Below, piece after piece: positions 14,944 through 41,550 of a stretch of 64,000 nt of DNA; position 1 is the stretch's first letter, and the number at the start of each line of letters is the position of its first letter. Under the pieces are notes generated by a model, which had not been told where the DNA came from, made no database searches, and worked only from the letters and a program-made list of their open reading frames with translations. The stretch spans positions 124,001-188,000 of IMG/VR virus record IMGVR_UViG_3300044645_002359. One strand, 5' to 3'. A program made the position numbers and the translations under genes.

Positions 14944-17766
14944 ATGCCACGTTATTCACCACTACCGTCCGTTTCGATAGACCCCCGAAGTGAAGCAGAT
15001 TTGGTTCAAGCTGCTGCCCAAACCGTCTACGAAGCCTCTAACAAAACTTTAAATGATTTCAGTGCAGGCAACCCTCTGGCAGTTCTTTTAGAGGGGCAGG
15101 CTTTCGCACAGGGAGAATTTTTGTATTGGGCCAATCAGCTACCAGACAAGATCCTGATTGAGTGGATAGGACCCTTTTTGGGGGCGATGAGAAGGCTGGG
15201 GACCACTTCCACAGCCGAGCTGGTTGTAACAATTCCCCCAACCGGGAGTTCTACAGTAATTCCCTCAGGAACGATTTTTTCCACTAACCCTCAACTTACA
15301 TCTGGAGAAAGTTACGAATTCATATCAAATTTAGACCTGGTTATACCTTCGGGAGAGGCGACTGGAAGAGTTCCAGTGTATTCAAGGTTCGTTGGAAGCA
15401 TATATAATGTTCCTTCAAATTCAATTACAGGGGTTGCTAATACAGGTGCTCTCAATCTTTCGGCAACCAACCCTCAGCCGTCTGTTGGAGGTAGCGACGT
15501 AGAAACTTTCCAAGAAGTACAGGAAAGATTTTTCACCCTTATCCGTAGAAGAAACCCTGTCAGTGAGTCCGATTGGCAAGACTTTTTCATTGATTTGTAC
15601 GGGATTGGAACTTTAACTTCGGTTCAACCGAATCGTTCAAATTTTTACGGCTACAACTACACCCAAGATTACACTCTCCCTAATGGACAAGTCTCTTTCT
15701 TCGTGTTGGGTCCCAACGGTCAAGAATTAACCACGCAACAATTGTCCTTGGGTCAAAATGCGGTGAACTTTTCCGTACCCGTTGAAAACCAAGGACATTT
15801 ATTCCCAATCACCTTGAGTCAAGTACAATACAACTTGACTGTTGAGGTTAACTCAAATGGATCGTTCGGCTCAAACTTCAAAGACAGTTCTCTAAATTTT
15901 CGCGATAAACTTTTCTCAGTATTGACACCGGGTCAGACTTTTCCAGCCGACATCACACCGACAGTAAGTGATATCGACGCCGCTTTTTACTCTACTTTTG
16001 ATGCGAATACTAGATTTAGAGACCCCTCAATAACAGAGTCTTTAGCGTATAATACTCCAAATTCCCTGAGTAAAGAAGCAGCGGTTTATACGAACGTCTA
16101 TGATTTCACACCCTCAAGTAGTATCTTGAAGCAGAATGACCTTATTGTTGTAAACACCCCCAACCCAACTTTTTACCCAGTAGAGGCTGATTTCACACCT
16201 TATTCTTCCAATAAGTACGATCAGACCGTTTATGGTAATCTTTCCTTAAAGCAGATAAAACCCTTGACGTCAGGATCTTACCTCCTTGGCGACATTGTGT
16301 ATTACGACGGTGCTGGGGACCCGGCTGAACAAGGACTTCATGTTGTCTTAGAAAACCTCAACATAGCTTCTTCTTCGGACGTTTTGTCTTCTATAGCAAG
16401 CGGAAAAGTGTCTGGGGTTAAAACTTTTTCACCCTGGGTTGTAGGCAACTCTTATGTTTACTCCTCGGGAGGAACCATAGACCCTGAGATAGTAGAGTAC
16501 AATTACTCTTCGGGAGAATTTGTGCCTCTGACTCCTTCTTCTGTTCCCTTAAACAGTCGCCCAGGAGGGTTCGCCTGGCTGGTTTCACAGAACTTCACTC
16601 TCAACCCTTCCACGAATGATATAACTGGGGCCCAGACCGAGGTTTTAATCGGATCCTATATTACCCCTCAACAACTAGAGCCTAATTCGTCCTACACCTC
16701 TGGCATATGGGTTTGCACTCCCCAAATAGGCGGTGGACCATCACAAGTTGTAGATCCGTACTACAACTATGTAGATCTGACCAAAGGGGCCATAGTGAAA
16801 TATGCTTATGTTGAAGCTAATTTCACCTACACCCCTAACGAATTGACCGTTAGCGAGTACTTCAACCTCCTAGTTGATCAAGGAGTGCTGTCGGAAATTC
16901 TAGTATTTGAAGGGGATGGCGGTTTGCCTATCTACAAGTACAAAGCTCGGTTTAAAGCGGGTCAATACTTGCTGTACAAAGAATCCGCGTCCTCTCTACC
17001 CACTTACTACATATCTTCCTTATTTTTCACACCAGATAGCACGAACATACAGGACTTACTAGGGAATGGCTCAGTCTACAATTTGGCGCCGACCCCTGCT
17101 CTTCAAGCGCAACTGAACTCTGATTTGGCGGGCTCTTCTCTGAAAAATTTCGATCGGATGTTCACTTTTTTCCTTGGAGACCGCACTTTTTTCCGGGAAG
17201 GCTCAAATGTACAGTCTTACACTGCAACTTCTGCAGTTACACCCTTATTTGACTTTAACATTTATTTGAACAATGGAATTTTCGTTGAGTCCGAATCTTT
17301 AGGGCAAGCTCTACCTTTAGCTAATGGCTATATCCCGTTTTTTAATCCCGTTTACCTTAACACCACTGAAGACACAATTTTAAGCGAGGACGGAAGAAAT
17401 TACTACAGAGTCATGAAAGCTTTCACACCTTCTACAACGGTGACAAACTGGACTGGAATGGTGACAAACAACACGTCTAGGTACGAAGAATTCGCGGGCA
17501 ATTTACTACGTTTTGTAGTCTCCTACCGGTGCGAAGAACCTGTTCTTTCCCAGTACGGATTGGAGACTTCTTCAATTAAACTTGGATCTTGTCAGATAAC
17601 CATCATACCCAGAAACACTGGCAGGAACTTTAGTTCCTCACCGAACTTAGTCTACGTCTGGGAGAATGCCTCAACCTTGAGCGAAGTACCCGATCTTTCC
17701 TGGTATACAGGAACCACTTTTGAATATAGCCCACCCAACTACGGTGAAGGAACGTTGGCCCTATGA
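14944..17766 (+). CDS. Baseplate J-like (wedge) protein with long C-terminal extension
   Basis: IDPRSEADLV, NDFSAGNPLAVLLE, TNPQPSVGGSDVET...RRRNPVSESDW baseplate-J motifs. Confidence 0.82.
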   Translation: MPRYSPLPSVSIDPRSEADLVQAAAQTVYEASNKTLNDFSAGNPLAVLLEGQAFAQGEFLYWANQLPDKILIEWIGPFLGAMRRLGTTSTAELVVTIPPTGSSTVIPSGTIFSTNPQLTSGESYEFISNLDLVIPSGEATGRVPVYSRFVGSIYNVPSNSITGVANTGALNLSATNPQPSVGGSDVETFQEVQERFFTLIRRRNPVSESDWQDFFIDLYGIGTLTSVQPNRSNFYGYNYTQDYTLPNGQVSFFVLGPNGQELTTQQLSLGQNAVNFSVPVENQGHLFPITLSQVQYNLTVEVNSNGSFGSNFKDSSLNFRDKLFSVLTPGQTFPADITPTVSDIDAAFYSTFDANTRFRDPSITESLAYNTPNSLSKEAAVYTNVYDFTPSSSILKQNDLIVVNTPNPTFYPVEADFTPYSSNKYDQTVYGNLSLKQIKPLTSGSYLLGDIVYYDGAGDPAEQGLHVVLENLNIASSSDVLSSIASGKVSGVKTFSPWVVGNSYVYSSGGTIDPEIVEYNYSSGEFVPLTPSSVPLNSRPGGFAWLVSQNFTLNPSTNDITGAQTEVLIGSYITPQQLEPNSSYTSGIWVCTPQIGGGPSQVVDPYYNYVDLTKGAIVKYAYVEANFTYTPNELTVSEYFNLLVDQGVLSEILVFEGDGGLPIYKYKARFKAGQYLLYKESASSLPTYYISSLFFTPDSTNIQDLLGNGSVYNLAPTPALQAQLNSDLAGSSLKNFDRMFTFFLGDRTFFREGSNVQSYTATSAVTPLFDFNIYLNNGIFVESESLGQALPLANGYIPFFNPVYLNTTEDTILSEDGRNYYRVMKAFTPSTTVTNWTGMVTNNTSRYEEFAGNLLRFVVSYRCEEPVLSQYGLETSSIKLGSCQITIIPRNTGRNFSSSPNLVYVWENASTLSEVPDLSWYTGTTFEYSPPNYGEGTLAL

Positions 17767-24194: not shown

Positions 24195-25274
24195 ATGGCC
24201 ATCCCTAAGATAAAAGAAGCCATCTTGTCAACGCCGAAGACAGTAGTTCTGTACTTTGACAGCCCCATTGACACCCGAATTAGTGTTCCAGTGAACAGTT
24301 TCACTGTGAACTATGGTCAGTTCGGGGTTGTAACCATTGTATACTCTTCGGACACGATGGTTTCTCTAGGGTTGGATAGTAGCCTCTCTCCTTGGGACGA
24401 AGTTTTCGTTTCCTATGAACCGCCGTTGGATCTGAACGCCTGTATGAGGGGACCCATACCTCCTTCCGCTAACGATGTTGTTAAGAAAAGAAACGCCGTT
24501 AGAGCTTTTTATCGAGTAGCAGTTAGAAACTCTTTAGCGCCCGACGAGCGAACGGACGGTTCCCGTGAAGGGTCGAACCTTGGGCAAACAATCGGGGGTT
24601 ACGGCTTCCCCTATCAGAATCGGTCTGGGGTTCTAACCGAACATAAATCCGACCCACGGAGTGCCTCTCCGGACGACTTCATAATTGCTTACGGGCTTAA
24701 AGAAGCAATTCAGCTCACAAACATAGACGACGCAAGCGCAAACTCGGTGAATGTCGCTAAAATGAGGATGGCGCTTGAGGATGCAAATTCTCTAATTGAC
24801 TCATACATCGAGCAATCAGGTAAAGCGGGAAGGGTTCTAATAACAAGCAACCGCCGCCGAACTGCTTTAATTATAGCAAGATATTACCTAGACAATGTTC
24901 GAAGAAGAGAAGATGTATACAAAGATTATGTAGAATCTCTAAAACAGCTTGACGCTGAACGCGAAATGACTGCTATTCGAGCAGGGCATGGAGATTCGGC
25001 GATAGACACGAAGAGAGGAATTATGCGTTCCTGGCGCATCCCTCAAAGATATAATGGTGTGTCCGGTAAAGGTCTCAGCGGTTGGACAACGGATACAGCT
25101 GGGGATCAAGCACCAGACTACCGTTTAGGTTACGGTGCGGTAGGGCAAAACAACGATCAAGAAAATTGGATTTCCGCCCGAAACTACGAAGACTTGGGAG
25201 GTACTCCTCAAATCACAGCACCTAGTGATGCGGGTGGTTACTTCATTAACGGCTCCGACCAAACTTTCCCTTAA
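24195..25274 (+). CDS. Head-tail adaptor (Mu gp36/DUF1320-like) with N-terminal Ig-like (SwmB-like) domain
   Basis: FIIAYGLKEAIQLT...ALEDANSLIDSYI...IARYYLD...YKDYVESLKQL; N-terminal VVLYFDSPI...NSFTVN...VFVSYEPP. Confidence 0.7.
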   Translation: MAIPKIKEAILSTPKTVVLYFDSPIDTRISVPVNSFTVNYGQFGVVTIVYSSDTMVSLGLDSSLSPWDEVFVSYEPPLDLNACMRGPIPPSANDVVKKRNAVRAFYRVAVRNSLAPDERTDGSREGSNLGQTIGGYGFPYQNRSGVLTEHKSDPRSASPDDFIIAYGLKEAIQLTNIDDASANSVNVAKMRMALEDANSLIDSYIEQSGKAGRVLITSNRRRTALIIARYYLDNVRRREDVYKDYVESLKQLDAEREMTAIRAGHGDSAIDTKRGIMRSWRIPQRYNGVSGKGLSGWTTDTAGDQAPDYRLGYGAVGQNNDQENWISARNYEDLGGTPQITAPSDAGGYFINGSDQTFP

Positions 25275-28729: not shown

Positions 28730-30127
28730 ATGACACCGAAACATCCAAAAATAACACACGTTTCCCAGCTATCGGAGCACTCAAGCTGGAGAAAGTACAA
28801 GAGAGAACTTCTTGAACTTGAAATGAATGGCGGCCACTGGGCAAAAACGACTGACTTAACTAAAGAGTCTGTCAAAAATAGTTTCGCTGCCTATTTATCT
28901 CTCTCCACATCCGCACCCCTTCTAAACTGGGAAACTTATGAAGTCTTGGGGTCCGCCTTTGAAGACATTGCTGAAGGCAGGTACCCAATCCTCTTAGTAT
29001 CAATGCCCCCCCGCACAGGAAAGTCAACATTGGGCTCTCTCTTTCTGTCATGGCTCCTGGGTAAAGACCCTGATACTAACCATTTCGTAACTTCTTACAA
29101 TGAGGGTATCACCGACTTAGCAGTAAGTAGAGTTAAGCAGTTGGTTAGTGCCTTTCCTTTTGAGGAATTGTTTTCAAAACTTGATTTGCGGGCTGATAGC
29201 GTAACATCGGCTAACATCCCCTGGCGTAGGCACGGGTATCGTTCACCTTGGGGTGGACCCAACGGGGTACCAGGGGTTTGGTTAATCGATGACTATCACA
29301 AGTCCTCAAATATAACAGTAAATAAAGACTGGATAGAAGAGGAAATTATGACCCGGCGCCACCAAAACAGTGCCATTGTTGTTCTCGGGTCAAGATGGGG
29401 TGATGAAGACATTTTTGGCTACTTTTTAGAGAAATTCGGTGTCTTTGACCCCGTATCAAACCCGAAAGGAGCCGCCCACATTAATTTGTCAGCAATTATT
29501 GAAAGTAAAGAAGAGGCAGAAAATGATATTCTGGGTAGGAATGTAGGGGAAACCCCGAGTATAATCAATTCCTTCTGGTCCCCCGAAAATCTGAACCATA
29601 TTAGAAGGAATATCGGCGATGAAAAGTTCTCCTGGCTCTATAAGGGATGCTCACCGACACCAGAAATCCCCCCATTAGATAGAGTTATCATTTCTGTTGA
29701 TCCTGCTTTCAGTGCCGACAGCATTGATAAAACAGGTATTTGCATCGCAGGGGTTACAAAGAAAAGGGACTACATGTATGTTCTTGATACTTACGAAGGC
29801 AATTGGGACTTGAAAACTGTCGGAGTAATCCTAAGCCTAGCAGTTAAGGCATACGGAGCGGAAGAAATTGTACTTGAATCCGCCAGGGTAAGTGCAGCTT
29901 GGACTGTGTACCTACAGGACTTAGGGTTAAACGTTTGCGTAGGTAGCAAGTTGAAACAAACCAAATTAAATGCCTTCACTCAAATGTTAAGCTCAGGGAA
30001 AGTAAAATTCTCTAATTCGGATACTCTCAGTGCGTTGGATGCCTGTGATAACTTCCAGATTTCATTATCCGACACCATGTATGCAGTCTTAGTTAGCTAC
30101 AGCCAACTACTGCCTGTCGTTACTTGA
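28730..30127 (+). CDS. Second, diverged terminase large subunit paralogue
   Basis: N-terminus similar to preceding TerL; PPRTGKS, LIDDY, GSRWGDED, ISVDPAF...DKTGI; internal deletions. Confidence 0.8.
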   Translation: MTPKHPKITHVSQLSEHSSWRKYKRELLELEMNGGHWAKTTDLTKESVKNSFAAYLSLSTSAPLLNWETYEVLGSAFEDIAEGRYPILLVSMPPRTGKSTLGSLFLSWLLGKDPDTNHFVTSYNEGITDLAVSRVKQLVSAFPFEELFSKLDLRADSVTSANIPWRRHGYRSPWGGPNGVPGVWLIDDYHKSSNITVNKDWIEEEIMTRRHQNSAIVVLGSRWGDEDIFGYFLEKFGVFDPVSNPKGAAHINLSAIIESKEEAENDILGRNVGETPSIINSFWSPENLNHIRRNIGDEKFSWLYKGCSPTPEIPPLDRVIISVDPAFSADSIDKTGICIAGVTKKRDYMYVLDTYEGNWDLKTVGVILSLAVKAYGAEEIVLESARVSAAWTVYLQDLGLNVCVGSKLKQTKLNAFTQMLSSGKVKFSNSDTLSALDACDNFQISLSDTMYAVLVSYSQLLPVVT

Positions 30128-30502: not shown

Positions 30503-31327
30503 ATGACTCTGCCTATTCGTTTCGAAGGGGGTGAGGATCATGTAGTCCTAATTATCAACGAAGCATACACGTTATCCACTGTTGTCACTAACCCTCTTTA
30601 TCAAATGTTGAAAAGTAAAGAAAAGCGCAAAACACGCCGCGCTGAATCCGCTCAAATGGTTGAACGCTCCTACAACCGAGGCATGGATGTTGCCTCTCCG
30701 AAATTCCTCACCTGGCGGCAGGAAGAGTTTTGGAATCTACTTAAGAGAAATACCGTTACTATTGCCGCAGGTTCGGCCGGAACAGGTAAGACTCTTATTG
30801 CTCTGCATTTCGGACTCGTTGGAGTAGCAAACGGGGACTTTGACAAAGTCTACTATGTTCGCAGCGATGTTGGAGTTGAACTGCAAAGGGGGAGAGGAGC
30901 CCTACCGGGCGAGATGTCAGACAAGATTGCCCCACTCGTAGCTCCAATATACGACAACCTTCCCTGCATCATGCGGTCTCAAGGGGCTGCCGAATACCTG
31001 CTATCCAAGAAAATTATTGAGCCGATTCTACTCGAGGACATTCGGGGCCGCTCACTAAATAATGCTTTCATCATTGTAGATGAGGCCCAGAACTTCCTAT
31101 CAGGACACTGCAAAACGGCGCTCTCTCGCGTTGGCAAAGACTCAAAAATTTGCCTCATAGGAGATACAAAACAAACAGACTTGGAAGCTTTCCGCAGAGA
31201 CAACGGCTTGCTTGACGCCATTCATAGATTGAAAAATCTTGAGCAGGTTGGAATCGTGCAGTTTCAGAGAGAGGACATCGTTCGCAACTCTGTAATTGCT
31301 CACATTCTAGACAGATACGAGGATTGA
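30503..31327 (+). CDS. phoH: PhoH-family ATPase
   Basis: GSAGTGKT, GALPG, RGRSLNNAFIIVDEAQN, LSRVGKDSK, GDTKQTD, DIVRNSVI. Confidence 0.95.
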   Translation: MTLPIRFEGGEDHVVLIINEAYTLSTVVTNPLYQMLKSKEKRKTRRAESAQMVERSYNRGMDVASPKFLTWRQEEFWNLLKRNTVTIAAGSAGTGKTLIALHFGLVGVANGDFDKVYYVRSDVGVELQRGRGALPGEMSDKIAPLVAPIYDNLPCIMRSQGAAEYLLSKKIIEPILLEDIRGRSLNNAFIIVDEAQNFLSGHCKTALSRVGKDSKICLIGDTKQTDLEAFRRDNGLLDAIHRLKNLEQVGIVQFQREDIVRNSVIAHILDRYED

Positions 31328-31401: not shown

Positions 31402-32038
31402 ATGCAAGGTTCATTCTCTGAAGACTCCCTTAAAGTTTTCAACAAGCTTGCTTCAGCAACTCAGGAGTTAAATTACAGCGAATCTGGAACAGATTCGTAT
31501 GACTTCACCCGTTGTGTAAGGCCGAATGGCACTGCCTATGGTACCAAGGGTAAATGTAGAAAAGGTTCGGAGGAAGAAAGACAAACTTCAGAACTGCAAA
31601 AAAAATTCCCCCGAAGTAGAGGCATTGGCTAAAAAACTCATAAAGTTTCAAAAGAAAGAAAATTTCTTTAAAAGGCTGCAGGACCTTAGACCCGGTGTTT
31701 TGAGTGAACATTTTATGACTGCAAAAAATTTAGATTTAGTAATGTATTTTCTTGAAAAAGAGAAAGCTGCTCTAGAAGCTGAGAAAACAAGGATAAGGAA
31801 AGGCGAGATTGAAACTCCAAAACCAAAAGGTACTAAATCCTCTGAAGCAGAAATTGTAGCCAAAAAGTTAAATACAAGGTTGAAACGAGAATCTAGTTAT
31901 ACAGATTTCTTAGCAAAAGGCCGTGGATCTCTTGATAAAGAGCACGGTGACGAAGTAGCCCTATATTGGCTTACGAAGTTTAAGGAGGAAAGAGAAGTCC
32001 TGGAAGCCAGGAAAGCAAAATCAGAGGCTGAAAAATAA
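31402..32038 (+). CDS. Leader-bearing late protein, frameshifted at A8 run (31598-31605); ~211 aa if fused
   Basis: ORF 31402..31632 (MQGSFSEDSL...DFTRCVRPNGTAYGTKGKCRKG) and ORF ending 32038 are joined by a +1 shift in CAAAAAAAATT; C-terminal part has two ~65 aa repeats. Confidence 0.55.
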
Positions 32039-32221: not shown

Positions 32222-33847
32222 GTGAGTAGTAAATTCCTGTGGCAAAGTTTCTCCTCAAGACTTGAAAAGGCAGGTGAGGAAGCCCTAAGAGCTCTCCAGG
32301 AAGAAGCAAGAATAGAAAAGCAAACTAAAAGTGCTTCTTCCCCTGAGGGAGACCACACAAGTCTAGAGATACAAAGGGCGAAGGAAAAAGCTTCTCAGTC
32401 TTCAGGGAAAGTTAAAAAATGTTCCACAGGCAAACCTTGTTCTGCGACGTGTATTCACAAAAATGATGATTGTATATCGACTTTGCCTGCTCCCCTTGGA
32501 ATTGCCTTAACAAGGCTTTCTAAAGTCCTCTCCGAGCAAGTGGGCGAAAATAGAATTTCAGAAGAACAGGCAGAAGAGGTTGTATCAAAGATAAAAAGTA
32601 CAGAAGATTCTCAACTAAAGGCGTTTGACCTCTTTAAGAAACTAGTTGATTCTGGTAAAGCGTCCGAGACAGAAATGGACTCGGTCGCCAAGCTCCTTAT
32701 TAGCACCACTTTGACCCCTGGCCAAGACAGAAATGCCCCTCGTGTAATGAGCTTCGACGATATCGAGGCGGTCTTGAAGCCAGGGAAATTAGAACAGCTA
32801 GAACAAGCTTATCAAAATTCTTTCAGCTCGAAAGGGAAATTCGACCCCTCTCAGAAAGGGGGAATGGGGGATCTAATAAGTTCGAAGTACCTGGTAAATA
32901 AGGTCTCAGATGAGGTTGCAACCGCTGCTTACTATATGCTCCCCTCAAAAGTGCGGTCTGCCATAGACAAGGCGGGTGCTGTTAAAGGAGAGTCTGTAAT
33001 GTTCGCCGGCAATGATAAAGACGGTAACCCTACTTTTTCTGACAAACCTTCACGAGAGAGAGGAATTTTCTTGGTTAAACGCTGGATGGAACAAGGGGAA
33101 CTGGACCCTTACACAGGAAAACCCATTGACATAAGAAATGCAGAGCCGGAGCACATGGTTGCATTCGCCCATGCACTCGCAAAGGGTGGTGGTGGTGACC
33201 AACCTCGCAACCTGCTTTGGTCGGCATCTCAACCAAACAACCAAAAAGCTGGGTCAGACGATAATTTCATGGAGTGGAAAAAACGTCTTCAAGAGTTTAA
33301 GAAAATGGGTAGAGAGGCTTACGAACGTGAAGTATATAACCCCGCTGCAAACAAAGCCGAAGAAGCCAGAGGTAAGAAGGGTTCTGCCTCCGCAGATATA
33401 GCCAAAGCTTTATCGTCTCAAACACCAGAAGAAAGAATTGCAGGAGTGAAAGGACTGATACAGGCTTACGGGGATAAAGTTCGATATCTGGTAAGAGCGG
33501 CTGAGGTAGGCTGGCAACATCAGGATAGAGACTTAGATCACAGAATGGGTGGCAAACCCGCGTTCATGAACAACGGGGTTCCAAAACTACCCGGAACCAA
33601 TGTGAAGCCGAGCACAGCGGTTTTGGTAGCATTGGCTGCTGTGGACCCTTCGAAAAAAGAAGCTCTCAAGGAAGGGTTAGAGGATTTAAGAAAAGCTCGT
33701 ATTTTGACCGACGGTGAAGCGCAGTCTGTGAGGGGGGATAATAGCGCACGACTTAAACTTCAGACGCAAAAGAGTTCAGACTACGGCGAAAAATTAGCGG
33801 AATTACTGAACAACTTTGTGCCCAATATAAATGTGATATTAGAGTAA
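32222..33847 (+). CDS. Protein with 4-Cys motif and central HNH-like nuclease domain
   Basis: KKCSTGKPCSATCIHKNDDC; DPYTGKPI...EPEHMVAF...GGGDQPRNLLW...NNQK HNH-like pattern. Confidence 0.65.
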   Translation: MSSKFLWQSFSSRLEKAGEEALRALQEEARIEKQTKSASSPEGDHTSLEIQRAKEKASQSSGKVKKCSTGKPCSATCIHKNDDCISTLPAPLGIALTRLSKVLSEQVGENRISEEQAEEVVSKIKSTEDSQLKAFDLFKKLVDSGKASETEMDSVAKLLISTTLTPGQDRNAPRVMSFDDIEAVLKPGKLEQLEQAYQNSFSSKGKFDPSQKGGMGDLISSKYLVNKVSDEVATAAYYMLPSKVRSAIDKAGAVKGESVMFAGNDKDGNPTFSDKPSRERGIFLVKRWMEQGELDPYTGKPIDIRNAEPEHMVAFAHALAKGGGGDQPRNLLWSASQPNNQKAGSDDNFMEWKKRLQEFKKMGREAYEREVYNPAANKAEEARGKKGSASADIAKALSSQTPEERIAGVKGLIQAYGDKVRYLVRAAEVGWQHQDRDLDHRMGGKPAFMNNGVPKLPGTNVKPSTAVLVALAAVDPSKKEALKEGLEDLRKARILTDGEAQSVRGDNSARLKLQTQKSSDYGEKLAELLNNFVPNINVILE

Positions 33848-33851
33848 AACC

Positions 33852-34187
33852 ATGAGGAGAGACAACCGCTTCCCCCGTCCCGACCGCTTCACCTTGGAGC
33901 AAGGTCTACCACCCGGCACACTGAGCCACCCTCAAGCCTATGGGGTGTGGTCGATTTTCTTGCAGTGCGACGATCCTCACGACGTTGCACACAAGTTCCG
34001 TTCCTACCGTGACAGCAACTTTTGTTCAATACCCCGTGAGCAACTCCGGGCAATGAGAGACACCTTAATTCTTGGTATGAGGGAGTCAAATAAATCCTCG
34101 GCAAAACCGCTTAAGGAAAAGCAAAAAGGTCGGCACTATGCCGACTATGAGAATGAATGGGCGGAAAAGCCCCGCACTGGTGCCTAA
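33852..34187 (+). CDS. Hypothetical protein
   Basis: 111 aa ATG ORF tightly packed in operon. Confidence 0.55.
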   Translation: MRRDNRFPRPDRFTLEQGLPPGTLSHPQAYGVWSIFLQCDDPHDVAHKFRSYRDSNFCSIPREQLRAMRDTLILGMRESNKSSAKPLKEKQKGRHYADYENEWAEKPRTGA

Positions 34188-34189
34188 TT

Positions 34190-34555
34190 ATGACAAGTAC
34201 GAAAGATAAAATTGAGGGGCAATACCGCATACCCTGTGGCCCGATGGACATCGCCGCCGATGCAATTTGCCGCCGCTCATTGCGCGACCGTTTCGACAAG
34301 TTGCTCGATAGGCTGACTCTCGAAGTTAACCCTCACCTTCCCACCCCCGGAAAACTACCAAAAGACCTCGAAGTTTCTGATGACGGAAAAATCGTTGCGA
34401 AAAAAGAAGAGTCAGAGGAGGATCGCAGGAGAAAGCTCATTGACGAAGGAAAGTTTCGCGCAGAGGTTCACGCGGAAATCAAAAAGTACCGTGAGGACCT
34501 CCAAGGAAATGGGAAGATGCTACAGGATATCTCTGGTAAGTATGAGTCGATCTGA
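34190..34555 (+). CDS. Hypothetical protein
   Basis: ATG at 34190 right after upstream stop; 121 aa. Confidence 0.55.
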   Translation: MTSTKDKIEGQYRIPCGPMDIAADAICRRSLRDRFDKLLDRLTLEVNPHLPTPGKLPKDLEVSDDGKIVAKKEESEEDRRRKLIDEGKFRAEVHAEIKKYREDLQGNGKMLQDISGKYESI

Positions 34556-34596
34556 GTCTTTCTAAGGGTAAAGTTACTCAGTCTACAAACTATACA

Positions 34597-35184
34597 ATGT
34601 CCAACAGAATCAACGGTGACTTTGACTCTGACTCGATTGAAGCCTTCAGAGCAGCGTACGCAGCACAAATCCTAGAACCGGAAGACCAAGAGACAGACCA
34701 ATACACTGGTCTACCCACAAACTTGGTCCTAAATACTTCCCCTTGGCTACAACACACAGGACTGTGGAAAGCGAACGACGGCACGAACAAGGACTTCCAA
34801 CCGAACCAAGTTCTGGTACCCGGCTTAGAAAATTCTGAGGAAGAAGGCGAGTACGACGAACTTGACGATCTCTCTGAAGAAGAACTCGAAGAACTTATCG
34901 ACCAGCTTCTAGCCGACGAAGGCGACGACGACGACGACGAGGAGGAAGACCTGACCTATTATGAAGAAGATGGGGATGAGGACGAGCTTTCCGATGAAGA
35001 AGTTGAAAGGTTGATTGAGGAGCTTTTGAGTGAAGATGATGAAGAAATTTTCTTGTCAGATGAAAATGAATACGAGGGAGAAGAAATAGAAGAACAGGAA
35101 ATTACTGACGAAGAGATAGATGCCCTGATTGCAGAGATTGAAGCTGAATCCGAAGAGCTTAATTACGATCCTGAAGAAGATTGA
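34597..35184 (+). CDS. Very acidic protein with G-D-F leader
   Basis: MSNRINGDFDSDSIEAF; three LS/IT-D/E-EE-L/V/I-x-x-LI repeats in Asp/Glu-rich C-half. Confidence 0.65.
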   Translation: MSNRINGDFDSDSIEAFRAAYAAQILEPEDQETDQYTGLPTNLVLNTSPWLQHTGLWKANDGTNKDFQPNQVLVPGLENSEEEGEYDELDDLSEEELEELIDQLLADEGDDDDDEEEDLTYYEEDGDEDELSDEEVERLIEELLSEDDEEIFLSDENEYEGEEIEEQEITDEEIDALIAEIEAESEELNYDPEED

Positions 35185-35191
35185 GGTAACA

Positions 35192-35503
35192 ATGGCAACG
35201 TTCAATGAAAGAGCTTTTCTCATACGTGCATTAGCTGGAATTTTCGTAGTTCAATTTATTACGGTAGGTTACCAAACTTGGTCCTGCCAGTCTTCTGCCA
35301 CCCAGAATAAAGACTCAACTCAGGTCACTCTTATTTGCAACAATGCCACAAATTCTTTTAACGAGACCGGAAAACTTGCTCTAACAACGATTCTTGCTCT
35401 CCTGGTTCCTTCCTCGGGTCAAAACGTTTCTGAAATTCTTGATTCGGTGAGAGGAAACCGCAAACGTAAAGGTGAGGACGAAAATCAAGAGGGTAAAGTT
35501 TAG
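35192..35503 (+). CDS. Small membrane protein (two hydrophobic segments), possibly lysis-related
   Basis: FLIRALAGIFVVQFITVGY and LALTTILALLV; GAGG RBS before ATG 35192; charged C-terminus. Confidence 0.5.
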   Translation: MATFNERAFLIRALAGIFVVQFITVGYQTWSCQSSATQNKDSTQVTLICNNATNSFNETGKLALTTILALLVPSSGQNVSEILDSVRGNRKRKGEDENQEGKV

Positions 35504-35521
35504 GATCACTGTAGTGTCTTT

Positions 35522-36496
35522 ATGTACGGAGCTAATTTAGATTTTTCTTCTGTGTCTTTGCCAGGGGTCGGGGGTTCTCTCAATGCAGCTACCGCCATAT
35601 CCTCCGACAAACTTCAGGAAATGAATCGCACTGGCAAAAAATGGCGCACCGATAAAGACGGTAACATGTCTTTCCATAACGAAGCCATTTTGGACGCCAA
35701 TAAAGCAAGTCGCGAACGAAGGGAAAACTTGGTAAATCGTGACCGAGACGCCCATGCAGACGGTCAAGCGGCGATGAAAGAAATTTTCGGCCGAAAGAAA
35801 GCCCGGATGGAAGCCTTTCGAGAAATAAAAAGAAACGAATACAACTTTGCCGACGACACGGAACTAATGTCAATGCCACAACCTTTCGGTGAGGGTTGTT
35901 CTACAAGTTGCAAAAGCCCTGGAAAGTGTTCTTGCTCTTCCTGTAAAGCAAAAGCGAAAGCTGACTCAGAATTTCGTGAATGGACCACAGAAAAGCGCAA
36001 GAAACTTCAAACCGGTGAGGCGAAAGGGGAATTCGCCGGCCCGGGAATGTCGTTCCCGATCGCAAGTCCAGAGGACGTTTCAGCCGCTTGGTCCTCTGTA
36101 GGACGGGCAGCGAACCCCCGTAAAATCATGGCAGAAATCATTCGCATTGCTAAGAAGTATGGCTGGGAATCTGGCCTACCTCAGACGGTTAAAGATCGCA
36201 TGGAAGAGGGTGAGTCCGGTCTACCGTCCCCTGACTTTCGTGAATGGCCTTCAACAAAGAGGGAAGCTATGAAAAAAGGCGACATTGTCGGACAATTCGC
36301 TGGCCCAGGAATGTCCTTTCCCATCGCAAGTCCACAAGATGTTTCGGCAGCTTGGTCTTCCGTTGGCCGAGCTTCAAATCCTCGCGAAACAATGGCTAAA
36401 ATTATTGCAATCGCTAAGAAAAACGGCTGGGAGTCTGGACTCCCTCAGACAGTTAAAGACCGCCTGAACGCAGGTCAGTCAGGATTACCGAGGTAA
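35522..36496 (+). CDS. Hypothetical protein with tandem 88 aa domain duplication
   Basis: FREW...FAGPGMSFPIASPxDVSAAWSSVGRA...GWESGLPQTVKDR repeated with 264 nt period (35969, 36233). Confidence 0.75.
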   Translation: MYGANLDFSSVSLPGVGGSLNAATAISSDKLQEMNRTGKKWRTDKDGNMSFHNEAILDANKASRERRENLVNRDRDAHADGQAAMKEIFGRKKARMEAFREIKRNEYNFADDTELMSMPQPFGEGCSTSCKSPGKCSCSSCKAKAKADSEFREWTTEKRKKLQTGEAKGEFAGPGMSFPIASPEDVSAAWSSVGRAANPRKIMAEIIRIAKKYGWESGLPQTVKDRMEEGESGLPSPDFREWPSTKREAMKKGDIVGQFAGPGMSFPIASPQDVSAAWSSVGRASNPRETMAKIIAIAKKNGWESGLPQTVKDRLNAGQSGLPR

Positions 36497-36500
36497 GAAA

Positions 36501-36872
36501 ATGGGTTTAGTTGAAATTCCTCTAATCATTGCCGGTTGGTTTCTCACAGCAGGAATAGCAGGAGTAGGCGGAACTTTTGCCATTCAGGGTCGGAACAATA
36601 AGAGATTAGACACACTAAGGAGTAACTCTGATAAGAAAATTGAAAGACTTATCGAGGAAAATGACAAGAGAATTAACACTTTGATTGCTGCCAATACCCT
36701 CCAAAATGAGAACGTATTAAATCATATTAAGAACGTAGAAAAGGCTCTTAATGACATGAGAGCCGAATTACCGGAAAAGTACACTCTCAAGTCCGACCAC
36801 TTAAGATTGGTAGACAAAGTAGAAGAGTTGTCGATACAGTTCTACAGACATAGAGAGAAAGAAGGTGAGTGA
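36501..36872 (+). CDS. Membrane-anchored coiled-coil protein
   Basis: N-terminal hydrophobic segment followed by heptad-rich region. Confidence 0.55.
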   Translation: MGLVEIPLIIAGWFLTAGIAGVGGTFAIQGRNNKRLDTLRSNSDKKIERLIEENDKRINTLIAANTLQNENVLNHIKNVEKALNDMRAELPEKYTLKSDHLRLVDKVEELSIQFYRHREKEGE

Positions 36873-37377
36873 GAGCTACGACTGGCACCGGCTGGAAGGT
36901 TTGGGTTTTGACCTGAACTACATTGAAAAGGCACTTCCTGCCTCATACAAAAAAGGTCTAACTGCACGAGAGCAAGGTGTCGCTAAGCGTGAAGCGAAAG
37001 ATACTATGGAGAAGGCCAGCAGCAAGAAAACCTCGGCGAAAGAATTGTATAAAGACTGGGAGTCGGATAAGAGTTTCCGGAATAGGGAAAAAGAGATACC
37101 GAAGTCCCCAGCCACAGAAGCATTTGAGCGCGACTTTGCTGAGTCTTCCCCTTCCGACACAGCCCTTAAGAACAAGTCAAAAAAGTCCGGCATCCCTATG
37201 CCTATACTGAGACAAGTGTTTAAGAGAGGAATGGCAGCTTGGAGGTCTGGTCACCGTCCTGGTGTTGCACCGCAGCAATGGGCTCAGGCAAGAGTGTCAA
37301 GTTTCATCACGGGAGTGGGAGGAGCACGGAAGGCTGATGCCGACCTTTGGAAAAAAGCTAAGGGTAAAAAACATTAG
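36865..37377 (+). CDS. Conserved viral protein (DUF5824-like C-terminal domain)
   Basis: LKNKSKKSGIPMPILRQVFKRGMAAWRSGHRPGVAPQQWAQARVSSF, recognised from algal viruses and cyanophages. Confidence 0.6.
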   Translation: MSESYDWHRLEGLGFDLNYIEKALPASYKKGLTAREQGVAKREAKDTMEKASSKKTSAKELYKDWESDKSFRNREKEIPKSPATEAFERDFAESSPSDTALKNKSKKSGIPMPILRQVFKRGMAAWRSGHRPGVAPQQWAQARVSSFITGVGGARKADADLWKKAKGKKH

Positions 37378-37393
37378 TTTAGAACTTAGAGAA

Positions 37394-37762
37394 ATGAGTA
37401 ACTTGGGATCTTTTTCTCCGGAAGCTTACAGAGCTTACAAATATGGGGTTGAAAACCCGAGTAATTTCATGGGAATTGCTCCTGCATTCGAGGCAGAACC
37501 AGGGAGAAACCCTGATTCTTTTTCCATGGGCGAAGATGACGAGACTGACGAAGACGATTACGATCCAGATTACGGGAACGAGGACTTTGAGCCGAACGGG
37601 GGCATGGCTATGACCCAACTTCGCTCTATGCAAGATAACATCGAGACTATTCTTGAAATGATCGGTCCCTACTCAAACTTAGACCCCTGGATGGCTGCAA
37701 AGTTGGCCGAGGCTGAGCATGGTATGACAGCGATCGCCGACGCTTTACAATACAGAGATTGA
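37394..37762 (+). CDS. Hypothetical protein with G-S-F leader
   Basis: MSNLGSFSPEAYRAY; ATG 37394 lies just downstream of a GGGTAAA motif. Confidence 0.6.
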   Translation: MSNLGSFSPEAYRAYKYGVENPSNFMGIAPAFEAEPGRNPDSFSMGEDDETDEDDYDPDYGNEDFEPNGGMAMTQLRSMQDNIETILEMIGPYSNLDPWMAAKLAEAEHGMTAIADALQYRD

Positions 37763-37767
37763 TCAAA

Positions 37768-38127
37768 ATGTGGGGATCTTTCTTACAATCTGCTTATGAT
37801 TCTTTCCTGGAAGCGGCTATAGAAAAGTACGTTGAGAAAGTTGACAAAAATTCACTAGATTGCAATGACCCCCACGCCACTCCGAGTCACCCTACGAAAT
37901 CTCACATAGTTAAAGCGTGCTATCCTGGAGCCCCGAAAGGTGGCAAGCTGATTCGATTCGGTCAACAAGGTGTGAAAGGGTCGCCAAAGAAAGAAGGGGA
38001 ATCGGAGGCTTATAAAGCCAGACGAGAGGCTTTCAAGGCAAGACATGCTGCTAATATTGCGAAGGGTAAGTCTTCAGCTGCCTACTGGAGTAATCTGGAA
38101 GAATGGGCGGAAGACATTAAGTGGTAG
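37768..38127 (+). CDS. Conserved phage protein with G-S-F leader
   Basis: MWGSFLQSAYDSF; KSHIVKAC...KLIRFGQQG...RREAFKARH...SAAYWS domain seen in many aquatic phages. Confidence 0.6.
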   Translation: MWGSFLQSAYDSFLEAAIEKYVEKVDKNSLDCNDPHATPSHPTKSHIVKACYPGAPKGGKLIRFGQQGVKGSPKKEGESEAYKARREAFKARHAANIAKGKSSAAYWSNLEEWAEDIKW

Positions 38128-38159
38128 GGTATAATTCAGGTTGTAATCAACCTTAAACA

Positions 38160-38858
38160 ATGAAACACAACCACAGAATACTGCCCGGCCACATGGGAGG
38201 CGAGTACGTAGAAGGCAATGTTATACCTGTACAAGTAACTCAGTGTGACACTAACACTGCCAACCATGTAATGTGGCACTTTGCCAACTGGTGCCTTTAT
38301 GGTAAAGAAGAAGATCGAGCAGCCTATAAAGGTTTATCAGGTTGTTATAGTAAAGAAAAAATTATCGAGGAGAGGTTGAGACTAGCTGGTCAAATGCATG
38401 TCGATTCCGGCCACATTCAAGAAATAGGCAGGATTAACGGTAAGAGAGCCATGTCTCCGGGTGGATGGTTATACATGAACAGAATAGAATATGGGCGTTT
38501 AGGCTACAAATCAGGGATAGGAAAGTCGGAAAACAGGTTAACAGGGGAACAACTATCTGAGTTGGCTAAAAAGACTTGGAGAGAAGGGAAAGGTTTGGCA
38601 GCTTTAACTCCTGAGCAAAGAAGCGAAATAGGAAAAAGAGCTGGCAAAATTAGTGGACAAGTGAACAGAGAAAATAAAACAGGGGTTTGCGGAATTCCTC
38701 CAGAAGAACACTCCAAAAGAATGTCCGAAACGAACCGTCAAAAATGGCAATGTCCCGTGTGTGGTTTAATTGGTAATGCCAAGCAAATAAACGCGCATAT
38801 GGCAGCTGAACATAATCTCGATAAAAAAGCCAAAATTAAGTGTAACTCTAACCACTAG
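38160..38858 (+). CDS. Free-standing HNH-like endonuclease with C-terminal C2H2 zinc finger
   Basis: HNHRILPGHMGGEYVEGNVI...NHVMWH; EQRSEIGKRAG-type repeats; CPVCG...HMAAEH. Confidence 0.65.
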   Translation: MKHNHRILPGHMGGEYVEGNVIPVQVTQCDTNTANHVMWHFANWCLYGKEEDRAAYKGLSGCYSKEKIIEERLRLAGQMHVDSGHIQEIGRINGKRAMSPGGWLYMNRIEYGRLGYKSGIGKSENRLTGEQLSELAKKTWREGKGLAALTPEQRSEIGKRAGKISGQVNRENKTGVCGIPPEEHSKRMSETNRQKWQCPVCGLIGNAKQINAHMAAEHNLDKKAKIKCNSNH

Positions 38859-38891
38859 GAGGGTAAAGTTCACTGACAGCAATCTCTAAAC

Positions 38892-39515
38892 ATGCAAGGA
38901 AATTTCGGTATCCCAAATATAGACCACCTGGTAGAAGGAGTTCACTACCACATTGTAGATTGGGACTTTGCAGACCCTGCTCCTGCAGCCCCGACACCTA
39001 CCCCTCCTCACAATCCGGGTGAATCGTGCCCACCAAATCAAAAAATGGTCTTCGGGGTATGCCGCCGCGTGAATGCTAGCGGAGAACAACAAGTAGGAGA
39101 CGACACTGACCAGGAAAGATCCCTAAAAGACCAAGCTAAGAAAGAAGGCTCGGCTTTTGAGAATAACAAGGCAATGAGTGCCGGTGGTAAGAAGTACGGT
39201 TGGGCTATGAAAGGTGGAAAACCGGTAATGGTGGCTTGGGGATCTGTAGCAGGTGAGAAAAAAGTTGGGCTCAAGAAGCCTGCTTCTGCGGCTCCACCTA
39301 CCGCGCTCACCGGTTCCCCCGCTCCACGCGCTGGAGCATCCCCTGCACCCGCTAGAGCTGGTTCCCCAGCTCCAACTACAGCTCCAACAGCCCCAATATC
39401 AGCTACTGATAGAGCTGCTTATAACGCAGGAGGGGGCAATGCCGCAGCGCAAAGAGGCACGGGGCGAACTACTGAGCAAGTTATAGCTCAAGGTAAGAAA
39501 ATTTGGATAGACTAG
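38892..39515 (+). CDS. Pro/Ala-rich hypothetical protein with G-N-F leader
   Basis: MQGNFG; CPPNQKMVFGVCR motif; AGASPAP repeats. Confidence 0.6.
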   Translation: MQGNFGIPNIDHLVEGVHYHIVDWDFADPAPAAPTPTPPHNPGESCPPNQKMVFGVCRRVNASGEQQVGDDTDQERSLKDQAKKEGSAFENNKAMSAGGKKYGWAMKGGKPVMVAWGSVAGEKKVGLKKPASAAPPTALTGSPAPRAGASPAPARAGSPAPTTAPTAPISATDRAAYNAGGGNAAAQRGTGRTTEQVIAQGKKIWID

Positions 39516-39590
39516 ATCAGGGTAAGGGTAGGCGCTGATACGAATAAAGGGTAAGTTACAATTAACAGACATACTCTCCCCACTTGGCAA

Positions 39591-40112
39591 ATGTATAACC
39601 CAAGACCCTTAGACTTAGATACATTCTCAGAACAAGAGTTGCAAATCGAAGGGTACACTCATATGCCCACGGATTATTACAGGAACACCGTCATGGAGCC
39701 TGAAACCGTCTCCACATTAAGACCGAGTTTCGGAGAGTATGAAGCCATGGGAGAGAGGCACGAGGAAATCTCTTCTAAGATTGACTTACTCAATCAAGCA
39801 ATGAAACTTTCCCGTCAGAGGGGGGCTTTTCAAGAGTTGCAGAATCAAATGGCTGCCGTCAAGAAACTTGTAAAAGAGCGTGAAGAAATTGATGCAAAAA
39901 TGGCCACTGTTGACCTTGCCCGAAAGAAAACAGATGACCACAACATTGCTGCCGGTATGGAAACTTCTTACACAGAGCAACTGGATTCGGTAAACTCTCG
40001 CATCAACCGTTTACAAAAGCTTCTTCAGGACTTCAGTGAGTCCATGGGAGAAGGTGAGTTTGACTTTACTCGTAACGGTCGTAAAGGCAAAGCCTGTGAG
40101 GAGACACAATGA
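39591..40112 (+). CDS. Coiled-coil hypothetical protein
   Basis: 173 aa; several F/Y-x-E motifs; ends in degenerate KGKAC motif. Confidence 0.6.
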   Translation: MYNPRPLDLDTFSEQELQIEGYTHMPTDYYRNTVMEPETVSTLRPSFGEYEAMGERHEEISSKIDLLNQAMKLSRQRGAFQELQNQMAAVKKLVKEREEIDAKMATVDLARKKTDDHNIAAGMETSYTEQLDSVNSRINRLQKLLQDFSESMGEGEFDFTRNGRKGKACEETQ

Positions 40113-41389
40113 GGCGCTGCTCGAAAGGAAAAAGCTGCGGAGGAACTTGCATCAACCGCAACGTTAAATGCAGAGCCACTTTGTCTCCGAAAGTATCAAA
40201 GCAGGTTGAGGAAGCGGGCGACATCTTCCTCCGTTTGGTTAACGAGGATAAAAAACCGAGTTTGATTGTACAAAGGCTGATTGACGCCTTAGGGTTGGGC
40301 CCACTAACTCAAAGAGAAGTTGGCAATGACTTTCCCGTCTTAAAGAGGGAGGCAGAACGCCAACTCGCTGAGTTGCGCAGCCAACCCTCTATGACAGATG
40401 AGGAGATTGATCGGGCCAAACGACTTGAAATGGCTCTTATGGATGCTTGGGAAAAGCATACTAAGGCCGACCGCATGGTACTCTACGATCGACAGGACGC
40501 TCGAGAGTTTGACCATGATTTCATTCCTACCGACAAATTCGGCAAAGATTATGACTGGTCTCAGTCTTACGAATCTGGTGCCAAAGGTTTGGGCTCAGGA
40601 AGCTACGGAAACGTTATGCTCTCTAAACCACCACCGGCTCTTGTAGTGAAGAGAGGAGAAGTGAGTGAAAGTGAGGTTAAAATTCTAGAAAAGTTAAACG
40701 GTAAAGACATTTCTCCGAAGTTCGTTTCAGCGGAGGTCAACAAATACACCGTTATGGCGCGAGAAGGGGATATAGAATTCTACGAAGGAAGAATTGCAAT
40801 GACACGGGTTCCGGGTAAAGCCGTAGAAGATTTTGATGACAATGATCCCGCATACGGGACGAAGGTCGGAAGTACAACTCTTGGAGACGCTTATTTTCTT
40901 CTTCGTAGGAGACTTCACGAAAGCGGAGTTGCCCATAATGACTCTCACATAGAAAATGTCATTGTAGATAATAAGGGGAAAGCACGCTTCATTGATTTCG
41001 GGCTTTCTCAGGACGACCCTAGAGCAGCTCTATCAGAGGCCATTGGCATACTTGCAGATCGAAAATTGCTTCCTCAAGGTGTTGTACTAAAACGAGTTTT
41101 AGATGATTTTTCCGGGGACCGAAAAGGAAGGAAATATAAAGCTTACACCCAACCCATAAAAGACCTTCTTAAGGGTGGCACCAATACCAACCTCGAAAAG
41201 GTTGTTCGTAATCGCACTAAAGTATACGCAGAGCTTGCAAAGCTAGGTTTATCCAAGGATGAGATAGCTGAGCTTGTGGTTCATGAGTTAAACCAGCCCA
41301 TCAGCTCCTACAACAAAGGTGCCTGGTCCAAAGTAAGCAAAAAAGATGCAATGCGGATTATCCCCCTACTCTACGAAGGCGTAAATTAA
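40109..41389 (+). CDS. Ser/Thr protein-kinase-like protein with N-terminal 4-Cys motif
   Basis: RRCSKGKSCGGTCINRNVKC; Gly-loop LGSGSYGNV, VVK lysine, catalytic HNDSHIEN, DFG. Confidence 0.8.
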   Translation: MRRCSKGKSCGGTCINRNVKCRATLSPKVSKQVEEAGDIFLRLVNEDKKPSLIVQRLIDALGLGPLTQREVGNDFPVLKREAERQLAELRSQPSMTDEEIDRAKRLEMALMDAWEKHTKADRMVLYDRQDAREFDHDFIPTDKFGKDYDWSQSYESGAKGLGSGSYGNVMLSKPPPALVVKRGEVSESEVKILEKLNGKDISPKFVSAEVNKYTVMAREGDIEFYEGRIAMTRVPGKAVEDFDDNDPAYGTKVGSTTLGDAYFLLRRRLHESGVAHNDSHIENVIVDNKGKARFIDFGLSQDDPRAALSEAIGILADRKLLPQGVVLKRVLDDFSGDRKGRKYKAYTQPIKDLLKGGTNTNLEKVVRNRTKVYAELAKLGLSKDEIAELVVHELNQPISSYNKGAWSKVSKKDAMRIIPLLYEGVN

Positions 41390-41550
41390 TGAAAAATGAT
41401 CAAAAGTATTTGGAGCTAATGGCTCTCTACAAAAAAGTTCGAGGTAACCCGGATAAAATTAAACAAGCAGACAAAGTGTTGGATGCGGCTCTGAAACTTG
41501 GTAAGAGTGGTGTGAGTCCAGACGCAAAAGAAGCAGCGAGATACCTCTGA
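41389..41550 (+). CDS. 53 aa helical protein coupled to kinase gene (not in ORF track)
   Basis: TAATG overlap; MKNDQKYLELMALYKKVRGNPDKIKQADKVLDAALKLGKSGVSPDAKEAARYL. Confidence 0.6.
   Translation: MKNDQKYLELMALYKKVRGNPDKIKQADKVLDAALKLGKSGVSPDAKEAARYL

Follow-up and report, generated by a model that had tools for sequence, protein, structure and literature searches.

Two genes of one cyanophage genome carry the same cysteine-rich peptide in front of different enzymes, and the question they raise is what a module shared in this way does. The genes lie in a 64,000-nucleotide stretch, hereafter the window (bases 124001-188000 of the single 201,260-bp contig of IMG/VR record IMGVR_UViG_3300044645_002359), recovered from a lake-water metagenome. 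The contig belongs to a myovirus-type cyanophage; among cultured phages, Synechococcus phage S-CBWM1 (genus Aokuangvirus) is the closest to it. A first-pass annotation, made from the sequence letters, had proposed that a kinase and an HNH-like protein of this window share a conserved metal-binding or targeting module with interchangeable C-termini, as in polymorphic toxin loci, and all four peptides that it quoted were present where it had placed them. Our analysis supports the main points of that inference and indicates that this four-cysteine module (Cys4) and a second, two-cysteine module (DFTRC) are probably tags that load effector enzymes into the virion.

We located the first copy of the Cys4 module, KKCSTGKPCSATCIHKNDDC, at 32414-32473, inside the open reading frame (ORF) 32222-33847 of the HNH-like protein, and the second, MRRCSKGKSCGGTCINRNVKC, at 40109-40171, where it forms the start of the kinase ORF 40109-41389. 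The strict pattern C..GK.C[GSA].[TS]C[IVL].....C had exactly two matches, these ones, in the six frames of the 201,260-bp genome, and none in 100 shuffles of the genome. The two copies agree in 29 of 54 nucleotides and in 4 of 18 third codon positions; thus, they are old copies maintained by selection on the peptide, and not the outcome of a recent duplication. The invariant residues are C67, G70, K71, C73, T76, C77, I78 and C84 in 23 members of the HNH-protein family, and C4, G7, K8, C10, T13, C14, I15 and C21 in the kinase module. The extended consensus reads [KR][KR]-C-x2-G-K-x-C-[GS]-x-T-C-I-x5-C-x-[VI]-x-[LF]; in most phage proteins it is preceded by a basic helix (S-x-I-R-x-A-K-x-K-A-V-G-G-x-[KR]-[KR]), and L-V-x-L-P comes after it. 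A degenerate DNA pattern recovered the module in at least 119 viral stretches of IMG/VR, and about 109 of the listed matches were intact ORFs with all four cysteines. When a profile built from 52 diverse Cys4 sequences was run against 1.84 billion representatives, 796 clusters passed E<=1e-3; the median match start was amino acid (aa) 26 of the library proteins. A chance or compositional similarity of two unrelated cysteine stretches might be suspected for so short a motif, and about 20 of the 132 pattern matches in viral contigs were indeed spurious, lying in frames broken by stops or in ORFs of very small size; it was refuted by the empty shuffles, by eight columns that are invariant across the 52 sequences and by 69 clusters matched at E<=1e-10, and we give it practically no weight.

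The Cys4 motif forms the core of an unannotated, independent small domain of 40-60 aa. No model for the Cys4 or the DFTRC module was found in Pfam, PHROGs or NCBIfam, and the module profile gave nothing at E<=10 against PDB sequences. AlphaFold2 (AF2) folded the lone module as a beta-hairpin with the two inner cysteines on facing strands (predicted local distance difference test, pLDDT, 72), a model too small for Foldseek, which returned nothing from the PDB; in the full-length AF2 model of the 541-aa HNH-type protein, leader and module are of low confidence and detached from the confident body. Four cysteines within about 18 residues of a small hairpin recall zinc ribbons and knuckles. Unlike these, the module has the spacing C-x5-C-x3-C-x6-C instead of two CxxC or CxxH knuckles, and it matches no Pfam or NCBIfam model of any kind and no PDB sequence. 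The hairpin would be stabilised either by a metal or by disulfides.

The module also occurs outside phages. Five bacterial metagenome proteins (P0010, P0016, P0028, P0042 and P0058) combine a signal peptide with two tandem Cys4 modules; small bacterial proteins of this kind often end in C-H, are nameless in every library, and stand in ordinary chromosomal surroundings in the two loci that hold them (L177 and L178). Atlas feature searches with the small bacterial form and with the kinase N-terminus gave unnamed clusters or nothing. The position directly after signal peptides, in tandem, in such small proteins raises the alternative that the module is a disulfide-stapled cationic hairpin which, outside the cytoplasm, stabilises proteins exposed in the virion or periplasm or binds them to envelope components, and is no sorting signal. 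The facing inner cysteines of the AF2 hairpin would suit it, as would a spacing unlike the CxxC pairs of zinc ribbons, the two cysteines of DFTRC, and giant phage proteins in which Cys4 accompanies lipase and LRAT/NlpC-like domains, whose target is probably the envelope. Against this, the kinase, HNH, ADP-ribosyltransferase (ART) and NMNAT cargo must work in the cytoplasm, and the phage forms have no signal peptide and possess the additional conserved basic helix; we consider a hairpin of this kind quite unlikely as the explanation.

The second module, DFTRC, is about 57 aa long (M-x-G-S-F-S-E..L..Y..L...F-S-E...Y-D-F-T-R-C-x4-G-x3-G-x2-G-K-C-R-K-G), contains two cysteines and is present in six copies in the genome besides a decayed one, three of the six being damaged or very short (Table 1). 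The different cysteine module after a DFTR word that had been noticed in the ORF at 31402-31632, which holds DFTRCVRPNGTAYGTKGKCRKG, proved to be a complete copy of it. We found the exact DFTRC DNA pattern in 55 IMG/VR stretches, with up to eight copies per stretch by tblastn, and 18 loci (of at most 15 kb) contained both tags.

We then catalogued what follows each module, using for the clustering only the parts behind it. Cys4 precedes at least 18 unrelated C-terminal clusters (about 109 viral ORFs), and DFTRC precedes 23, including kinase, ART and cytidylyltransferase-like domains. The partners of Cys4 comprise a kinase-like group (31 loci), the HNH family of the window (29 loci), Zeta_toxin (Pfam, 8e-22), PGDYG (Pfam), a family resembling a minor head protein (PHROG match), weak Pfam matches to ART-PolyVal and Anthrax-LF-like (ATLF) domains and, in a bacterial form, SNase together with the Ada Zn-binding domain (Ada_Zn, Pfam). 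Among the best 140 proteins of the library, Pfam assigned Pkinase to 12, ABC1 to 6, APH to 4, ADPrib_exo_Tox to 6 and ART to 4. Giant phage proteins (1100-2000 aa) carry 1-2 strict-pattern matches or 2-4 profile matches and, except for P0092, lipase or LRAT (LRAT/NlpC-like) domains; in three of the four whose gene context was looked up they lie beside Phage_Mu_F, neck and major capsid genes, and the fourth (P0007) has as neighbours a peptidase M23 gene and very large genes without a name. A single fixed architecture was not seen in the pattern and profile searches or in this C-terminal catalogue; together with the kinase, ART and HNH matches among the library clusters, the catalogue bears out the earlier proposal of interchangeable C-termini.

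Such breadth also bears on the possibility that the module works as a regulatory switch, by sensing redox state or metal or by oligomerisation, which tunes enzyme activity in the photosynthetic host and has no role in localisation. Four invariant cysteines in the redox-active setting of a cyanobacterium, and a module that the model shows apart from the catalytic body, agree with it. One and the same switch would, however, need to govern at least 18 unrelated folds, and it leaves unexplained the detection of such proteins in virions, the head-gene context and the secreted bacterial forms; we regard it as very unlikely.

The evidence for virion loading comes from correlation in S-CBWM1 and from gene context. 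By tblastn, S-CBWM1 was the only phage with either tag among 50,697 records. It encodes five Cys4 proteins, namely gp106 (HNH), gp113 (RIO-like), gp161 (ChoK-like), gp162 (APH-like kinase) and gp174, and two DFTRC-type proteins, gp39 (NMNAT) and gp165. For gp113 and gp161 the annotated start comes after the Cys4 module, so that the deposited proteins are without it; the apparent true starts read MSKRC... and MGKNC... (L121, record 70401-70463; L172, record 117830-117886). PMC10665884 reports the APH, ChoK and Rio2 kinases, together with an NMNAT-like protein, from S-CBWM1 virions, and gp174 is annotated as virion structural in GenBank. The fourth S-CBWM1 kinase, the PknB-like gp173, has no tag and is absent from that virion list. 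Virion loading is thus favoured, since tag presence tracks virion presence in S-CBWM1; the targeting role suggested by the first-pass annotation stands on this correlation. It is likewise favoured by the late-gene and head-gene contexts: a homologue of the window block was found in 65 of the 102 Cys4 loci, and in the window these genes stand, all on one strand, after TerL/PhoH and before the tail fibres. A third reason is the cargo, which consists of kinds of enzyme whose injection is known or has been proposed (PMC5512222).

Under virion loading, a tag would direct its enzyme into the particle through a head-internal partner or the packaged DNA, and the enzyme would enter the next host with the genome and act there before phage gene expression. 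In freshwater cyanophages of the S-CBWM1 type, evolution has put the tags ahead of a wide range of unrelated enzymes that manipulate the host; in the window, the cargo would be a Bud32/RIO-like kinase with intact catalytic residues and a putative Cas9-type HNH nuclease. A 53-aa protein encoded next to the kinase and predicted to sit in its cleft may be a safety catch in the producing cell, or else a dedicated substrate.

A basic nucleic-acid-binding knuckle that holds enzymes on phage or host DNA in the infected cell, with any virion presence being incidental and due to carriage on the packaged DNA, partly overlaps this reading, as DNA binding could itself be the loading mechanism. The flanks are very basic (the K/R-rich helix, [KR][KR]C and GK), one bacterial form is fused to an Ada Zn-binding domain and SNase, and an HNH nuclease is among the cargo. 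The kinases, ARTs, NMNAT and zeta-toxin kinases, on the other hand, have no evident need for DNA, the secreted bacterial forms are not near DNA, and no DNA-binding family in Pfam, NCBIfam or the PDB sequences matches the module. As a full account of the module, such a knuckle seems to us unlikely, if the least unlikely of the alternatives.

Several points weigh against the loading of enzymes into virions as the function of the tags. The virion evidence comes from S-CBWM1 and not from the window phage; the S-CBWM1 proteome is taken from a secondary citation and from GenBank annotation, and the virion reports cover gp113, gp161, gp162, gp39 and gp174, and not gp106 and gp165. T4-like cyanophages that package kinases and NMNAT had neither tag by tblastn; therefore, the tags are not the only route into the virion. 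DFTRC genes are spread across the genome, in late regions and others alike. Since Cys4 likewise stands behind signal peptides in small proteins that bacteria secrete, it cannot be a capsid signal and nothing else; the Cys4 domain has a more general property, stability or binding, which phages co-opted. Adjacency counts are biased, since the motifs themselves served to fetch the loci; the tight adjacency to the 111-aa gene described below is not a product of tag-based fetching. Finally, the placement of the 53-aa protein in the kinase cleft is a model built with our own alignments.

A stronger version, in which either tag suffices to load an arbitrary protein into the head of these myoviruses for delivery to the next cell, and effectors shuffled behind the tags at fixed slots, each dangerous one restrained until delivery by a small cognate plug such as the 53-aa protein, amount to a modular cargo code, is possible but in our judgement rather doubtful. 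A code of this kind would parallel the targeting peptides of encapsulins.

In T4, capsid targeting relies on an N-terminal signal of about 10 residues, without cysteine, which is removed by the prohead protease. The tags of the window would resemble the T4 system in that an N-terminal signal brings non-structural enzymes into the head, to be injected with the DNA and to act first; unlike the T4 signal, they are conserved domains of 40-60 residues with four or two cysteines, and no sequence similarity to it was found. Words that recur in the leaders are F-S-E, F-A-E and W-F-D-F-A. The T4 internal protein Alt, an ADP-ribosyltransferase, is packaged and injected with the DNA (PMC5512222). Virion-associated kinases and NMNAT-like proteins are reported for S-CBWM1, S-CRM01, S-TIM5, S-SCSM1 and S-CREM2 (PMC10665884), and the window kinase, the HNH-type protein and the NMNAT-like protein of the genome are homologues of gp113, gp174 and gp39; the window phage differs from the T4-like members of that group in having both tags. 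A shared N-terminal module is not described in the papers on those virion proteins, as far as our reading and search extend.

The likeness to polymorphic toxins, MuF-toxins and polyvalent proteins (PMC5512222) is considerable. As in these systems, a constant N-terminus is followed by swappable kinase, ART, nucleotidyltransferase and nuclease domains, several paralogues exist per genome, some of them decayed, the giants have a head-gene context, and one effector has a predicted small cognate partner. The word cysteine is absent from the survey of polyvalent proteins (Iyer et al. 2017, PMC5512222). Unlike polyvalent proteins with their 2 to 15 effector domains, the window proteins carry one each, and some distant giants carry several. 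The polymorphic-toxin analogy of the first-pass annotation therefore holds in part: a shared N-terminal module with variable C-terminal effectors, a variable slot with conserved flanks, decayed paralogues and a predicted kinase plug speak for it, but no known secretion or trafficking domain was found. We detected no Pfam or PHROG match to Rhs, PAAR, LXG, filamentous haemagglutinin, MuF or zincin in the window proteins, nor any secretion or trafficking domain among the module-bearing representatives checked in the same libraries. With regard to immunity genes, the kinase adjoins the conserved 53-aa gene, and the 111-aa gene downstream of the HNH gene is not effector-specific.

That 111-aa gene (S-CBWM1 gp107-like) and the PhoH-like gene delimit a variable slot. 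In 40 viral loci we found an ORF 36-233 bp upstream of the 111-aa gene: it was Cys4-tagged in 26, of DFTRC type in nine, PhoH itself in four, and cut by the end of the locus in one. The 26 Cys4-tagged ORFs belong to the HNH family, to a 282-303-aa family or to a kinase-like protein, and the four loci with PhoH directly upstream represent the empty slot; in the window, the slot is occupied by the short DFTRC ORF and the Cys4-HNH gene. We conclude that effectors are swapped at fixed genomic slots and decay quickly. The 111-aa gene was also considered as an immunity gene for the HNH protein and rejected, as it follows unrelated tagged effectors too, and PhoH itself in the four empty loci.

Decay is visible upstream of the kinase. 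The ORF at 39591-40112 ends in ...FDFTRNGRKGKACEETQ, a tail that had been taken for a degenerate Cys4 copy on the strength of its DNA likeness to the kinase start. The tail belongs to the other module: it aligns column by column with DFTRC and with the intact homologue L078:3276-4118, relative to which 8 residues, the first cysteine and about 100 C-terminal residues have been lost, and the same decay is present in an independent contig of about 87% DNA identity. The DNA likeness is real (15 of 23 bases between 40083-40105 and 40124-40146) but in different frames, and it arises because both stretches encode K-G-K-x-C; 15 or more matches in 23 are expected with a probability of 8e-5 at a fixed offset, and about 0.8% of trials reach that number when the best offset from 20 to 80 is taken. 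Homologues of ORF 39591 lie directly upstream of Cys4 kinases in many loci.

Two other DFTRC copies have disturbed frames. Behind the short ORF at 31402, an overlapping ORF continues in the +1 frame, and one base less in the A8 run at 31598-31605 (within an A8-T2-C5 stretch) would fuse both frames into a protein of about 212 aa. The A8 run was confirmed by contigs from two samples, and two related strains have A7-T6-C3, also out of frame; the overlap could be a pseudogene or a slippage site. In the paralogue at genome 11348-12140 (G000:C1, locus L167), about 225 residues are open behind an in-frame TAG (genome position 11453). Read-through of this TAG was rejected, there being no suppressor tRNA among 38 tRNA genes called by aragorn, and it was treated as a nonsense mutation.

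With S-CBWM1 gp174, whose annotation reads 'virion structural protein', the 541-aa protein shares 45% identity, and its GTG start at 32222 is ATG in related strains. Its AF2 model (pLDDT 79.8, predicted template modelling score 0.70) is confident from residue 90, with residues 1-89 floppy. Strands 307-311 and 331-335 followed by helix 336-343 form a beta-beta-alpha unit spanning 307-343, and H311 (33152-33154), at the end of the first strand in the catalytic position, and the conserved N330 (33209-33211) are invariant in 23 family members. The Pfam matches are weak (HNH_4 in 6 and HNH in 4 of the 23, HNH_4 reaching 0.0012 at best), and the window protein itself is below every Pfam threshold. 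Atlas HNH endonuclease clusters align to residues 252-352 (TM 0.51 over 87 aa), and the best BFVD match was S-CBWM1 gp174 (8e-40), with an S-TIM5 'virion structural protein and packaging' entry at 1e-8; with the full-length model, Foldseek against the PDB and VIA-align wide returned insignificant helical matches only. Taken together, residues and predicted fold point to a putative Cas9-type HNH nuclease.

The 426-aa protein is syntenic with the RIO-like kinase gp113 of S-CBWM1. All five motifs of the kinase superfamily were recognised, and invariant across 16 homologues are G162 and G164 of the Gly-rich loop, K181 of beta3, E189 of alphaC, H276, D278 and N283 of the catalytic loop, and D296 and G298 of the DFG motif; matches to Pfam Pkinase, APH and ABC1 and to NCBIfam Bud32 were below threshold. 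Its catalytic residues are intact, as judged from the alignment.

The 53-aa protein corresponds to S-CBWM1 gp114. Its gene is present in 12 viral loci, and in 11 of these it adjoins a Cys4 kinase, on either side. The cassette of a 39591-like gene, a Cys4 kinase and a 53-aa gene is kept in 11 loci and in S-CBWM1 (gp112-114). Residues D4, K6, Y7, L10, M11, Y14, K15, R18, P21, L31, A34, S43 and Y52 are invariant. The predicted complex with the kinase scored an ipSAE of 0.87, and the best of three controls 0.01; this mark was attained by 58 of 80 solved complexes and by 2 of 110 mismatched pairs, a rough calibration since our own alignments were used. Three runs agreed in at least 85% of contacts, with a partner pLDDT of 85-86. 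In the model, the interface involves the G-loop (159-167), K181, D278, residues 280-283, D296 and the hinge region, and residues 45-53 of the partner lie in the kinase cleft. The prediction suggests an active-site plug with antitoxin or pseudosubstrate logic; alternatively, the protein could be a dedicated substrate or an activator. Epsilon-zeta toxin-antitoxin pairs and pseudosubstrate kinase inhibitors such as PKI are the known parallels, and as in these a small helical protein beside a kinase-fold enzyme is predicted to fill the nucleotide or substrate cleft. Unlike in those systems, the binding is a predicted one, and there is no sequence relation to them.

Table 1. Features of the window and of the 201,260-bp genome discussed in the text (aa, amino acids).
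Feature	Numbering	Position	Strand	Description
PhoH-like gene	window	30503..31327	+	upstream edge of the slot
76-aa ORF	window	31402..31632	+	DFTRC copy; complete module 31402-31575, little else; 85 bits
Overlapping ORF	window	31526..32038	+	+1 frame, 170 aa; possibly detached 3' part of the 31402 gene
541-aa gene	window	32222..33847	+	leader, Cys4 module (aa 67-84), HNH-type body
Cys4 copy 1	window	32405..32521	+	aa 62-100; Cys codons 32420, 32438, 32450, 32471; profile 54.4 bits
HNH (beta-beta-alpha-metal) core, putative	window	32975..33277	+	aa ~252-352
111-aa gene	window	33852..34187	+	S-CBWM1 gp107-like; conserved; downstream edge of the slot
173-aa ORF	window	39591..40112	+	ends in decayed DFTRC module, core 40062-40097
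426-aa gene	window	40109..41389	+	Cys4 at extreme N-terminus, then Bud32/RIO-like protein kinase
Cys4 copy 2	window	40115..40216	+	aa 3-36; profile 51.6 bits
53-aa gene	window	41389..41550	+	start overlaps kinase stop; predicted active-site plug or partner
DFTRC copy	genome	10325		then ART-like by eye, apparently truncated
DFTRC copy	genome	11348		in-frame TAG at conserved Tyr
DFTRC copy	genome	27047		then 530-aa protein of unknown function
DFTRC copy	genome	45712		then NMNAT-like domain by eye; no Pfam match at E<=0.01
DFTRC copy	genome	52109		short

Identity to S-CBWM1 is 28.5% for TerL, 62% for the portal and 62-78% for the major capsid protein, and megablast of the region against the 50,697 phage records gave no match. 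The genes lie in a one-strand block, syntenic with S-CBWM1 gp103-gp116, in the order TerL (28730-30127), PhoH, several small genes, kinase and three tail-fibre genes (1589, 1216 and 1513 aa). Within the block, the ORF at 38160-38858 (232 aa; region 38106-39007) is missing from the otherwise collinear related contig L117, which suggests that it was inserted; inspection by eye shows a word resembling H-N-H at its N-terminal end and a CxxC...H...H finger at its C-terminal end, with weak Pfam zinc-finger matches. The 324-aa protein at 35522-36496 contains two tandem repeats of about 95 aa, weakly DUF6582-like, and its Cys-rich CSTSCKSPGKCSCSSCK corresponds to CGGSCSCDEC of S-CBWM1 gp111. The 170-aa protein at 36865-37377 has a DUF5824 domain (4e-19), which is also the C-terminus of large 'cytidyltransferase' proteins in T4-like cyanophages (phrog_3041); another part of those proteins has a fold resembling the 541-aa protein.

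Elsewhere in the window, the major capsid gene is split into three tblastn pieces (~10879-13892), and Rfam identified three group I introns in it (10862-11158, 11177-12101 and 12320-13083). The homologue of the S-CBWM1 head peptidase gp170 (5997-8525) aligns as two pieces, aa 2-228 and 362-472, about 1.5 kb apart, which suggests an insertion or a divergent middle. Outside the window, an array of about 35 tRNA genes occupies genome positions 1-17600 and 24423-24732, with a permuted tmRNA-like gene also called by Aragorn in this region; S-CBWM1 has such an array too.

Phages inject a few enzymes with their DNA and, to our knowledge, the selection of non-structural enzymes for the virion is understood in few model phages only. 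What we describe is a new domain family that probably serves a known kind of strategy, in which effectors travel with the phage and combine a constant targeting part with exchangeable enzymes. The Cys4 family alone comprises about 800 clusters, has no Pfam or NCBIfam model and extends to secreted bacterial proteins. The kinase and its predicted plug add a new candidate for a regulator or a system resembling antitoxins. A cultured test system exists in S-CBWM1 grown on Synechococcus CBW1002, and if a tag proved sufficient, chosen proteins could be loaded into phage particles. The tags mark a diverse and fast-turning arsenal of kinases, nucleases, ADP-ribosyltransferases, zeta-type kinases and NMNAT. 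If virion loading is true, their signature would predict particle-borne proteins in a widespread group of freshwater cyanophages, and it would explain the published and so far unexplained presence of kinases and NMNAT in cyanophage virions.

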